A DNA stretch of 9,945 bases from Octopus sinensis (lineage: Eukaryota). Under the pieces are notes generated by a model. That model was given only the letters and a program-made list of their open reading frames with translations. It did not search any database and had not been told where the DNA came from. A program made the position numbers and the translations under genes. Below are positions 292 to 8,284 of this stretch, in pieces. The stretch covers positions 1 to 9,945 of the forward strand of contig NW_021827750.1 of assembly GCF_006345805.1 (NCBI RefSeq), written 5' to 3'. Each line of letters begins with the position of its first letter. The first letter of the stretch is position 1.

Positions 292-572
292 CCCCAGTAC
301 TTATTCTTTGTAAGCCTAGTATTTATTCTATCGGTCTCTTTTGCCGAACCGCTAAGTTACAGGGTCGTAAACACACCAGCATCGGTTGTCAAGCGATGTT
401 GGAGGGGGGGCAAAAACAGGCACAAACATATACACACATACACACACATAGATATATATACATATACATATATACGACAGGCTTCTTTCAGTTTCCGTCT
501 ACCAAATCCACTCACAAGGTTTTGGTCGGTCCGAGGCTATAGTAGAAGACACTTGCCCAAGGTACCACGCAG
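292..572 (-). mobile_element. SINE family A, copy 1 (truncated at both ends)
   Basis: Reverse complement matches the body of the copies at 977-1395 and 2171-2572 (e.g. gcttctttcagtttccgtctaccaaatccactcacaagg at 481-519). It lacks the A/B-box head (stops at cacgcag, 572) and the 3' tail. Confidence 0.9.
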
Positions 573-979: not shown

Positions 980-1395
980 TAGTAGTGGGTGTGCGGTAAG
1001 TAGATTGCTTACGAACCATTGGTCCCGGGTTCAGTCCCACTGCGTGGTACCTTGGGCAAGTGTCTTCTGCTATACCTCAGGCCGACCAAAGCCTTGTGAG
1101 TGGATTTGGTAGACGGAAACTGAAAGAAGCCTGTCGTATATATGTATATGTATATATATCTATGTGTGTATATGTTTGTGTCTTTTTTATCCCCCCCAAC
1201 CTCGCTTGACAACAGATGCTGGTGTGTTTACGACCCTGTAACTTAGTGGTTCGGCAAAAGAGACCGATAGAATAAATACTAGGCTTACAAATAATAAATA
1301 CTGGGGTCGACTTGCTCGACTAAACGCGGTGCTCCGCATGGCAACAGTCAAATGACTGAAACAAAATAAAGAGTAAAAAGAGTAAAGTAAAGAGT
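977..1395 (+). mobile_element. SINE family A, copy 2 (full length, tRNA-derived head)
   Basis: Has a degenerate A box near 986-997, B box GGTTCAGTCCC (1028-1038) and an internal (TA/TG) microsatellite (about 1137-1180). 3' hairpins are GTCGA-cttgc-TCGAC (1306-1320) and CAGTCA-aa-TGACTG (1345-1358), followed by an (AAAGAGT)-like tail to about 1395. Colinear with copy 3. Confidence 0.93.
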
Positions 1396-2170: not shown

Positions 2171-2570
2171 CTCTCTTTCTCTCTTTTCTCTCTTTTACTT
2201 GTTTCAGTCATTTGACTGCGGCCATGCTGGAGCACTGCCTTTAGTCGAGCAAATCGACCCCGGGACTTATTCTTTGTAAGCCCATTACTTATTCTATCGG
2301 TCTCTTTTGCCGAACCGCTAAGTGACGGGAACACACCAGCATCGGTTGTCAAGAAATACTAGGGGGACAAACACAAACATACACACATACATATATATAT
2401 ACATATATACGACAGGCTTCTTTCAGTTTCCGTCTACCAAATCCACTCACAAGGCATTGGTCGGCCCGGGGCTATAGCAGAAGACACTTTCCCAAGATGC
2501 CACGCAGTGGGACTGAACCCGGAACCATATAGTTGGTTAGCAAGCTACTTACCACACAGCCACTCCTGCG

Positions 2571-2572
<2 letters not shown>
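2171..2572 (-). mobile_element. SINE family A, copy 3 (full length)
   Basis: Minus strand starts GGCGCAGGAGTGGCTGTGTGGTAAG (A box TGGCTGTGTGG) and contains GGTTCCGGGTTCAGTCCC (B box). Same body and 3' hairpins as copy 2, with an (AAAAGAGAG)-like tail ending near 2171. Confidence 0.95.

Positions 2573-2610
<38 letters not shown>
2573..2610. repeat. (TA)19 microsatellite abutting the SINE copy 3 5' end
   Basis: Read directly. Confidence 0.97.
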
Positions 2611-2961: not shown

Positions 2962-3183
2962 TGCATATTTTATAGAAGAAATGCAAAACGTCAAATATAT
3001 TGTGAGCCCAATACGTTTAGTAGATAGTGATATCGATTTTGTTAAATGATAACAGGTATTTTAAAGTTTAGCCTGATCAGCTTAAACACATAAATACATA
3101 CATATGTAAATACATGTTCAAATCAAATATACAGATAAGTATTATTTGCGTATTTATTTATTATTTGATTCCCTACATATTCT

Positions 3184-3299
3184 GCTGCGAGCTGGAAGTC
3201 TTTTGTACGTCGAGCAAAATAATAAGCAGTAATTCGCCCCTCTTTATATTTTGAGTTCAAATTCTACTGCAGCCGACTTTGCCTTTCATCCTTTAATCG
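3184..3299 (+). mobile_element. Decayed 5' part of a second tRNA-derived SINE family (family B)
   Basis: gcgagctgg... head, B-box-like GAGTTCAAATT (3253-3263) and ccgactttgcctttcatccttt (3273-3294) match a second octopus SINE as I recall it. Ends abruptly near 3299. Confidence 0.6.
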
Positions 3300-3301
3300 T
3301 T

Positions 3302-3376
3302 TTTACTACACCTCTGTATGAGTATTTACTACACCTCTGTATGAGTATTTACTACACCTCTGTATGAGTATTTACT
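3302..3376. repeat. Perfect 23-bp tandem repeat, 3 copies plus 6 nt
   Basis: TTTACTACACCTCTGTATGAGTA at 3302, 3325 and 3348, then TTTACT. No mismatches and no spacers. Confidence 0.97.
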
Positions 3377-3991
3377 CCACTGCCAAGCTTTGTTGAGCTA
3401 GTGTGAGTTGTTAGGTTCATCGAACTAGTATACTCTCGAGGTCAAAACACGGCCTCCACATCAGGCAGGTTTGGTAGAGAGATTATACTGAGACCTTCAT
3501 TCTGCTGTGGACTGAACATCGGCAATCTAATGCAATCCATATGTTCATAATTTGTATGCATGTAAGTATATATAGACTTTTATACAGACGTGTAAATACA
3601 CTGAGACATGAACATGCAGTAGACCGTAGTAAAAGAATGCGAATTAATTGTATTTGGGTTTCATGAAATTCAGACAATCAACTCCATTTACTGATAGTAA
3701 ATTATTACATAAACTTCTTTCTAACTTACTGACTTTTTGCTGGTCAATAAAAAGACTGTTCGATCCACTATTTTGTCTTTAAAAGAAGTTCACACAATGA
3801 ACGACGTCATTTATATATTCCGTGATATAATTTCCGATTCTGATACTAAATGAAATCCCACTCAAATTATTCACTAATCCTGTCTTTACACACACATGCG
3901 CGCGAACATGCACACACACACACATAGGTACATATGTAACCACACAGGTACTTTTGGTAATATTCTCCTTCTCTCAACTTTTCCGTTTTCC

Positions 3992-4135: not shown

Positions 4136-4141
4136 ATATAT

Positions 4142-4179
<38 letters not shown>

Positions 4180-4230
4180 GATATATATACTATATAATTA
4201 TATATATATATATATGTATATATGTATATA
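4136..4230. repeat. Interrupted (TA)n microsatellite
   Basis: Read directly. Abuts the foldback element. Confidence 0.95.
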
Positions 4231-4233
4231 TTA

Positions 4234-4582
4234 CAGATGAGAAAATAATTTTATTCTCAAACTCAGGATAATGTTAATAATATAGAATGAACAGGATAAA
4301 AACTATCCTTATTTTGCAGAAAAATCTGTCGGCGACCAGTCATGAGACTTGAACTCACATCCCTGTGATAACGCGTCTTATAAAGCTAGATTTATATATC
4401 CTAAATTTGCAGCAGAATTTGTCATTCGGGCAGCTTAGCTTAATGGTAAAGCACTTGACGCGTAATCTCAGGGATGTGAGTTTGAGTCTCAAAGCTAGCC
4501 GCAAAATATGGATATTTCATCCTGTTCATGCTATATTATTAGCATTATCCTGCGTTTGGAAGTAAAATTATTTCCTTATCTG
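4234..4582. mobile_element. Foldback/MITE-like element with long terminal inverted repeats, CAG...CTG ends and flanking TA
   Basis: 4232-4317 vs reverse complement of 4501-4584 gives 74/86 identities by manual alignment. 4343-4377 vs reverse complement of 4457-4491 gives 31/35. TA at 4232-4233 and 4583-4584 flank CAG/CTG termini, as in Tc1/mariner-superfamily insertions. Confidence 0.7.
4429..4499 (+). pseudogene. tRNA-like (Thr-CGT-like) sequence inside the foldback element
   Basis: A box TAGCTTAATGG (4436-4446), D stem GCTT/AAGC, loop CGCGTAA with CGT at 4461-4463, T arm TGAG-TTTGAGT-CTCA. The acceptor and anticodon stems are mispaired and the B box is mutated (GTTTGAGTC), so it is not a functional tRNA. 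Confidence 0.55.
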
Positions 4583-4674
4583 TATCTTTCAATACATCTC
4601 AACGCTTTTAAATCAAACTTTGTTTCTTGAATTTAATGTCTGCATATATATATATACACATCCGGCTTTTGCAG

Positions 4675-4727
4675 ATGGAGCATGAGTTTTTAACCGTGAC
4701 TGGAAAATTCAGAGTTGAATATCCTGG
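4675..4727 (+). CDS. Candidate internal exon ([18 protein letters not shown], phase 0 to 2), product unknown
   Basis: Acceptor ggcttttgcAG (4673-4674) and donor GG|GTAAGC (4728-4733). It has a single open frame whose phase-0 start fits the end of the 2750-2832 exon. Confidence 0.6.
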
Positions 4728-4945: not shown

Positions 4946-5078
4946 TATATAGATATATATATATATATATATATATATCTATATATATATATATATATAT
5001 GCATATATATATTATACATACCTATATATATTATATATATATATCTATATATATGCCATATATATATATACATACATA

Positions 5079-5126
<48 letters not shown>

Positions 5127-5141
5127 TATACATACACACAC
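4946..5141. repeat. Long interrupted (TA)n microsatellite ending in (CA)n
   Basis: Read directly. Confidence 0.95.
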
Positions 5142-7941: not shown

Positions 7942-7990
7942 TGATATTTTATGCTATAAAACGATTTTTCGCATATTATTACAAAAAAAA

Positions 7991-8284
7991 TTTTCCCCAT
8001 ATATAATATAAAATAATATTTTCCCCATAATATGAAATATTTTCTTAATATATAATATAAAATTATCTTCTCCATATAATATAAAATAATATTTTCCCAT
8101 ATATAATATGAAATATTTTCTCCATATATAATAAGAAATATATTTCTCCATATATAATATGAAAAATATTTTCTCATATATAATATAAAATAAAATTTTC
8201 TCCATATATAATATGAAATAATATTTTCTCTATGTATACTATAAAATTATATTTTCTCCATATATAATATGAAATATTTTTTCC
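7991..8284. repeat. AT-rich minisatellite, about 11 degenerate 21-28 bp units
   Basis: Consensus about TTTTCTCCATATATAATATGAAATA(ATA), read directly. Confidence 0.92.

Follow-up and report, generated by a model that had tools for sequence, protein, structure and literature searches.

A near-complete palindrome with a tRNA-derived interior in non-coding Octopus DNA, most likely an inactive transposon-type element

The question raised by this locus is what kind of sequence a short palindrome carrying tRNA-like units in both of its arms represents: a DNA element once moved by a transposase, a pair of retroposed copies or a local replication error, and whether such a structure could direct the synthesis of a hairpin RNA. 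The window, that is, the whole stretch of 9,945 nucleotides of Octopus sinensis DNA that was analysed, is AT-rich non-coding animal DNA in which one SINE occurs three times and (TA)n arrays occur five times. Neither a Pfam match nor coding remnants of a transposase or reverse transcriptase were found among its ORFs. The repeats that surround the palindrome are as follows:

292-572, minus strand: abundant SINE, copy 1
995-1381, plus strand: abundant SINE, copy 2
2190-2583, minus strand: abundant SINE, copy 3
863-976, 1820-2060, 2573-2626, 4136-4231 and 4946-5134: (TA)n arrays, long and imperfect, making up ~7% of the window

The palindrome is nearly complete and spans 353 nt (4232-4584), with the sequence TA-CAGATGAG...CTTATCTG-TA by direct reading. 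An earlier note had described a foldback element at this site; all of the features that it listed lie where it had placed them, and its counts of paired bases in the outer arms (74/86) and inner arms (31/35) proved correct on re-alignment. The parts of the element, with the first T run in its right flank, are:

4232-4233, no strand: left TA, either the palindrome's own final dinucleotide or a candidate target-site duplication of Tc1/mariner type; direct reading; adjoins the (TA)n array 4136-4231
4234-4317, plus strand: left outer arm, candidate terminal inverted repeat, beginning CAGATGAG; pairs with 4501-4582
4304-4330, plus strand: 27-nt direct repeat, copy a (TATCCTTATTTTGCAGAAAAATCTGTC), 81% identical to 4397-4423; blastn E=0.034, marginal
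4318-4330, minus strand: 13-nt piece present in the left arm only, reading GACAGATTTTTCT on the minus strand; gap in the arm alignment; direct reading
4331-4393, minus strand: left tRNA-like unit, 5' end at about 4393; from inverted-repeat search and alignments
4397-4423, plus strand: copy b of the 27-nt direct repeat, within the asymmetric centre and separated by 5 nt from the right tRNA-like unit downstream
4429-4500, plus strand: right tRNA-like unit, pseudo-tRNA; Rfam RF00005 over the full model length, 25.2 bits; ARAGORN at a relaxed threshold only
4501-4582, minus strand: right outer arm, candidate terminal inverted repeat, ending ...CTTATCTG; pairs with 4234-4317
4583-4584, no strand: right TA; direct reading
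4606-4609, plus strand: first TTTT downstream of the right unit, in the flank; direct reading

A repeat search recovered the outer arms (4232-4301 against 4515-4584) as 70 nt with 87% complementarity, and the inner arms (4332-4377 against 4457-4502) as 46 nt with 80% complementarity, including a core of 35 nt in which 31 positions are paired. When the whole element was globally aligned with its reverse complement, both pairs joined into one continuous palindrome (4232-4377 against 4457-4584), broken by a 13-nt insertion in the left arm (about 4318-4330) and by three indels of 1-2 nt. The centre of the element, comprising 79 nt (4378-4456), is asymmetric. The palindrome is real and lies far above chance, since blastn between the element and its reverse complement gave E=5e-38 and the single-strand DNA fold reached -95.5 kcal/mol, as opposed to -30.3 +/- 3.6 in dinucleotide shuffles (z=-18.2).

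When the arms are aligned from GACGCGT outward, 113 matches, 14 mismatches and 20 gap columns are obtained (89% identity). The differences comprise 6 transitions, 8 transversions and ~5 indels, corresponding to a Jukes-Cantor distance of ~0.12 between the arms, or ~0.06 per arm. This level of identity, with both substitutions and indels, indicates that the arms have decayed since their common origin.

The tRNA-derived sequence that had been claimed for both arms was borne out by an Rfam match on the right and by its inverted copy on the left. The right unit matches the Rfam tRNA model with 25.2 bits, below the gathering score of 29. The corresponding E is 0.11 for the whole window and 0.0039 for a region of 371 nt, each multiplied over 4227 families; division by the number of families, as the definition of E would imply, gives about 3e-5 in the window for the tRNA family alone. 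Tested for this single family, the likeness of the right unit to a tRNA is clearly non-random. No tRNA was reported by ARAGORN at default settings, and a pseudo-tRNA of 75 nt was located at 4428-4502 when its threshold was set to 90%. On the minus strand, where the left unit lies, Rfam gave no tRNA match. This left unit keeps the acceptor 3' half, the T arm and the anticodon region, and has lost ~18 nt of the D arm together with the A box: the kept stretch extends between the acceptor 3' end (4331) and ACGCGT (4371-4377), with the T arm and the anticodon region inside it, and a D-arm remnant follows.

A genuine tRNA gene was ruled out by the Rfam score under the gathering threshold, the negative result of ARAGORN at default settings, an anticodon stem that pairs poorly (the acceptor and D stems of the right unit do pair) and an ambiguous anticodon. 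The anticodon register of the right unit can be read as 'Tyr', according to ARAGORN at the relaxed threshold, or as CGT in another register. Human tRNA sequences, which are approximate, match the unit at 52/73 (Arg-CCT), 51/73 (Lys-CTT) and 51/73 (Thr) positions. The naming of a parent tRNA was dropped, given this ambiguous register and the few matches that separate Lys, Arg and Thr.

The internal promoter boxes read as described before. The left unit carries a B box on the minus strand, GTTCAAGTC (4346-4354, direct reading), and the right unit carries GTTTGAGTC (4480-4488), in which C56 is replaced by T. In the B box, C56 is invariant. The proposal that the two B boxes diverged by CpG decay agrees with their dinucleotides, TG in one arm versus CA in the other, the pattern expected from an ancestral CG. 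As had also been pointed out, there is a single A box, TAGCTTAATGG (4436-4446), which has the full consensus and precedes the B-box-like sequence by 32 nt; that of the left unit has been deleted. Thus, from the claim of a Pol III promoter, the plus-strand A box and the left B box stand, and an intact promoter does not: both boxes are intact in neither unit, with C56 changed to T in the right B box and ~18 nt of the D-arm/A-box region gone from the left. Judging from these boxes, the tRNA-like units are promoter-dead in this copy. Taken by itself, the tRNA-like RNA does not fold better than shuffled sequences (z=-1.4).

The right unit runs rightward on the plus strand (4429 to 4500) and the left unit leftward on the minus strand (about 4393 to 4331), so that the 5' end of each lies toward the centre and the two diverge outward. 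Owing to this orientation, Pol III starting from either unit would copy one arm only and, the arms being inverted copies of each other, both RNAs would have nearly the same sequence instead of being complementary. The Pol III cassette for a long hairpin RNA that the earlier note had envisaged was therefore not borne out: the divergent units, the alike transcripts confined to one arm each and the decay of the boxes exclude, for this copy, a hairpin RNA driven by Pol III. On the minus strand, the T5 run in GACAGATTTTTCT lies 7-11 nt past the 3' end of the left unit and resembles a Pol III terminator, at which transcription by Pol III would stop. The 13 nt that hold this run are missing from the right arm; with the first TTTT at 4606-4609, Pol III starting at the right unit would make an RNA of ~181 nt that contains only the right arm. 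A long hairpin RNA is possible only if a transcript begun elsewhere reads through the whole element.

The ends of the element bear on how it arose. They read TA-CAG...CTG-TA, as originally reported. TA followed by CAG is the usual signature of Tc1/mariner elements and their commonest terminus. The palindrome boundary, set by alignment, falls on TA+CAG at both sides, a coincidence that we estimate from base composition at ~1 in 1000 for an arbitrary duplication boundary. However, the TA pairs on both sides of the element constitute weak evidence of a target duplication, because TA is self-complementary, and so may just as well be the terminal dinucleotide of the palindrome itself, and because the left flank is the adjoining (TA)n array (4136-4231). 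Other target duplications (the 8-bp hAT type, TTAA and the 3-bp TWA type) were considered and rejected by direct reading, as the flanks do not fit them. The terminus (first ~25 nt, CAGATRAGRAAATAATTTTAY) has no inner copy above the level of shuffles within the arms, of the kind found in an IR/DR layout, and hence there is no sign of inner transposase-binding sites.

We favour, with moderate confidence, a decayed MITE or foldback element of Tc1/mariner type with a tRNA-derived interior, present here as an old, inactive copy. According to this proposal, the element would have been inserted at a TA by cut-and-paste, through a Tc1/mariner-type transposase supplied by another element, which its ends would fit. 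The site before insertion would have read ...TATAT-TA-TCTTTCAATAC, with a single TA. The interior would derive from a tRNA gene or from the head of a SINE, and it occurs here twice, inverted and with both units pointing outward. Two origins can be proposed for this arrangement. Either the family itself would be a full palindrome, or a simple MITE, in which a tRNA-like core lies between a 27-mer and an inverted 27-mer with an outer arm on each side, would later have gained an internal inverted duplication, for instance by template switching in gap repair. The marginal 27-nt direct repeat (4304-4330 and 4397-4423, 81%) suggests the simple-MITE layout with an inverted duplication of the core. Present activity would be structural only, as an imperfect hairpin of ~150 bp in a read-through host transcript or in single-stranded DNA.

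Features by which MITEs are recognized are present: terminal inverted repeats, in the form of arms with 89% identity, and a small size (353 nt) without coding capacity. The longest ORF of the element has 66 aa, for which no homologue was found in a protein search, and exact look-up of the ORFs adjoining the element returned no record. Tc1/mariner elements and MITEs have been annotated in Octopus genomes (PMC13282606). The divergence of the arms (JC ~0.12) is of the same order as that of the expansion of TIR elements in O. vulgaris, at JC 0.09 (PMC13282606). On the other hand, a single copy is known, and an asymmetric centre would not be expected of a clean family-level palindrome.

The search for relatives covered the window and a sample of 158 kb of Octopus DNA, made up of O. 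vulgaris, O. bimaculoides and O. sinensis loci reached through protein anchors; a cephalopod rhodopsin sequence served as one anchor, and the SINE-encoded peptide gave two further loci. No second copy was detected elsewhere in the window by blastn, and none in the 158 kb, which were searched with blastn, with an nhmmer profile built from both arms and for the terminus with mismatches allowed. In the same 158 kb, the window's abundant SINE is matched dozens of times. Given a genome of ~2.8 Gb (derived from PMC13282606), the negative result in this sample excludes only a family of more than ~50,000 copies per genome. Scans of metagenomes and viruses with arm or T-arm patterns returned only chance matches or prokaryotic tRNA T-arms. 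A full-text literature search, with incomplete coverage, found no description of a TIR element or MITE with tRNA-derived arms, or of this sequence.

The strongest rival is a local inverted duplication, in which a tRNA pseudogene or a solo tRNA-derived SINE, with ~85 nt of flank, would have been reverse-copied in situ by a fold-back or template-switch replication error, the palindrome never having moved as a unit. The sole copy seen in the window and the 158 kb would agree with such an event, as would the asymmetric centre and the indels in the arms, although a sample of 158 kb is too small to prove uniqueness. The T5 run placed directly past the left unit, like that downstream of a genuine tRNA gene, points in the same direction, and the TA pairs can be read as part of the palindrome, which is abutted by hairpin-prone (TA)n arrays. 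Nevertheless, a duplication of this kind would have to stop by coincidence exactly at TA+CAG in both arms, at the ~1 in 1000 estimated above, and we regard it as somewhat unlikely.

It is doubtful that the palindrome is the normal form of an Octopus TIR family, with one outward tRNA-type Pol III unit per arm. If it were, young copies would fire SINE-like RNAs, made up of the tRNA-like head and the terminal repeat, into both flanks. Such a family would be a DNA-transposon counterpart of the TRIMp3 retrotransposons discussed below, adding a DNA-transposon case to the short list of carriers of Pol III modules that are not SINEs, and it would offer a possible route by which new SINEs originate from MITEs, or the reverse.

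The abundant SINE of the window is unrelated in sequence to the palindrome (blastn), and it matches O. vulgaris, O. sinensis and O. bimaculoides loci with 75-90% identity over 250-450 nt. The peptide that it encodes is embedded in predicted proteins of O. bimaculoides and O. vulgaris (e.g., CAI9742205.1 and XP_052833090.1), and a 186-aa ORF running through the SINE in the window had no match in the protein search. Together, the matching loci and the peptide show the host to be Octopus. Its copies 1 and 2 form an inverted pair (292-407/1191-1306, 95% complementary; 424-536/1075-1187, 93%), a longer potential hairpin than that of 4232-4584. Two opposed copies of the same SINE lie ~5 kb downstream of rhodopsin in O. 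vulgaris (locus L099, 19319-20507) and O. sinensis (L101, 19303-20549), and this pair was not detected in the 24-kb O. bimaculoides locus (L100); they may be lineage-specific insertions. A further stretch of the window (3178-3294) matches L099 22596-22714 and L101 22905-23023, again downstream of rhodopsin, with 72% identity over 119 nt, and probably belongs to another, older family of interspersed repeats.

The reading of the palindrome as two head-to-head copies of a tRNA-derived SINE of ~160 nt (a 73-nt tRNA-like head and an 85-nt body), which had been offered as an alternative, fared poorly. It would need two independent retropositions or one event primed on both strands. Each half does show the layout of a SINE, in which a body comes after a tRNA-like head bearing A and B boxes, 89% identity is typical of two copies of one SINE family, and the 3' end of the left copy abuts a (TA)n array, a potential tail. 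SINEs are also common, accounting for 11.6% of the O. vulgaris genome (PMC13282606). However, the right copy ends ...CTGTA/TCTTTC (the slash marking the end of the element) without a tail, and direct repeats, that is, target duplications of 5-20 bp, flank neither the halves nor the whole. Moreover, the T5 run after the left head would halt Pol III short of the body, the two halves end at an identical base, and the heads lie within ~35 nt of each other, which calls for either a rare coincidence or some mechanism that SINEs are not known to use. The 158 kb in which the window's own SINE recurs dozens of times gave no solo half. Altogether, we consider this pairing improbable.

Finally, an active, DNA-mobilised element driving a long hairpin RNA from its own tRNA-type promoter is very unlikely, since the consensus A box with a B-box-like sequence downstream and the very strong hairpin potential are countered by outward units that give no transcript across both arms, by the T at the invariant C56 of the right B box, by the missing A box of the left unit and by a tRNA-like RNA that folds like its shuffles.

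Other features of the window were recorded alongside the palindrome. Two of the (TA)n arrays lie at the head end of SINE copies (976 by 995; 2573 by 2583) and one abuts the palindrome, an arrangement that hints either at a preference of insertions for (TA)n or at growth of (TA)n along their edges. Sub-threshold Rfam matches to mir-297, mir-466, mir-3149 and similar families were discarded as (TA)n artefacts. An AT-rich minisatellite with a period of 26-28 nt occupies 7964-8283 (~11 copies, 77% matches, consensus AAATAATATTTTCTCCATATATAATATG), and a young tandem repeat lies at 3302-3380 (unit of 23 nt, 3.4 copies, 98% identity, TTTACTACACCTCTGTATGAGTA). In addition, a possible mini-exon of 53 nt (4675-4727, plus strand) is located 91 nt downstream of the element, reading ttttgcag/ATGGAGCATGAG...TATCCTGG/gtaagc, with good splice sites on both sides (acceptor and donor); it opens with ATG and encodes a peptide of 18 residues. 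If this candidate exon is real, the palindrome would be intronic on the sense strand and transcribed through.

The significance of the locus depends on which reading holds. As a decayed MITE or as a local inverted duplication it would matter little, as one more repeat in a genome of which about two-thirds are repeats. A practical consequence concerns annotation, as tRNA-like sequences inside inverted repeats can be mis-scored as SINEs or tRNA pseudogenes. A read-through transcript of both arms would form an imperfect duplex of ~150 bp, the kind of structure that could serve as a substrate for RNA-editing enzymes. RNA editing is heavy in coleoid cephalopods.

Several known systems share parts of this architecture. 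In Drosophila Foldback (FB) elements, the arms consist of tandem sub-repeats, are kilobases long and are flanked by 9-bp duplications. Like FB, the octopus element consists almost entirely of an inverted repeat able to snap back; unlike FB, it has neither arms of kilobases nor 9-bp duplications, and no tandem repeats, such as the FB sub-repeats, were found within 4232-4584.

In octopus, the tRNA-derived SINEs OK, OR1 and OR2 were reportedly described by Ohshima and Okada. Each half of the palindrome, taken alone, resembles such a SINE in layout, with a tRNA-related head (A and B boxes) preceding ~85 nt of unrelated body. The whole differs from them in being palindromic with inverted ends, in having no right tail and no duplications of 5-20 bp, and in its T5 run past the left head. 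For the tRNA-derived SINEs as a class, see SINEBase (PMC3531059).

The TRIMp3 elements (Cassandra, Helenus and Ajax) belong to the non-autonomous LTR retrotransposons, both of their LTRs carry sequence derived from 5S RNA or tRNA, and they have been proposed to originate from the insertion of a SINE into a terminal repeat (PMC10886601). They share with the octopus palindrome a small, non-autonomous design with a module derived from a Pol III gene in both terminal repeats. TRIMp3 elements have direct repeats (the LTRs), a primer-binding site, a polypurine tract, duplications of 4-5 bp and an RNA intermediate, whereas the octopus element has inverted repeats and TA flanks, without a primer-binding site or polypurine tract. 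By analogy, TRIMp3 is the nearest conceptual precedent for a Pol III-derived module in both terminal repeats.

The MITEs of Tc1/mariner type and the related long-inverted-repeat hitch-hikers include Stowaway in plants, MADE1 in humans and Tc7 in C. elegans. Like them, the octopus element is short and non-coding, is flanked by TA on both sides, has termini starting with CAG and consists mostly of hairpin arms. They depend on a transposase made elsewhere, and the same is proposed here. Unlike them, the octopus element has a tRNA-derived interior and is known from a single copy; none of the sequences searched matched its arms. In its architecture, it appears most like these MITEs and hitch-hikers, which provide the closest working likeness. 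The element is most likely an ordinary dead palindrome of transposon type, in which the tRNA-derived interior is one slightly unusual ingredient of an ordinary kind of repeat.
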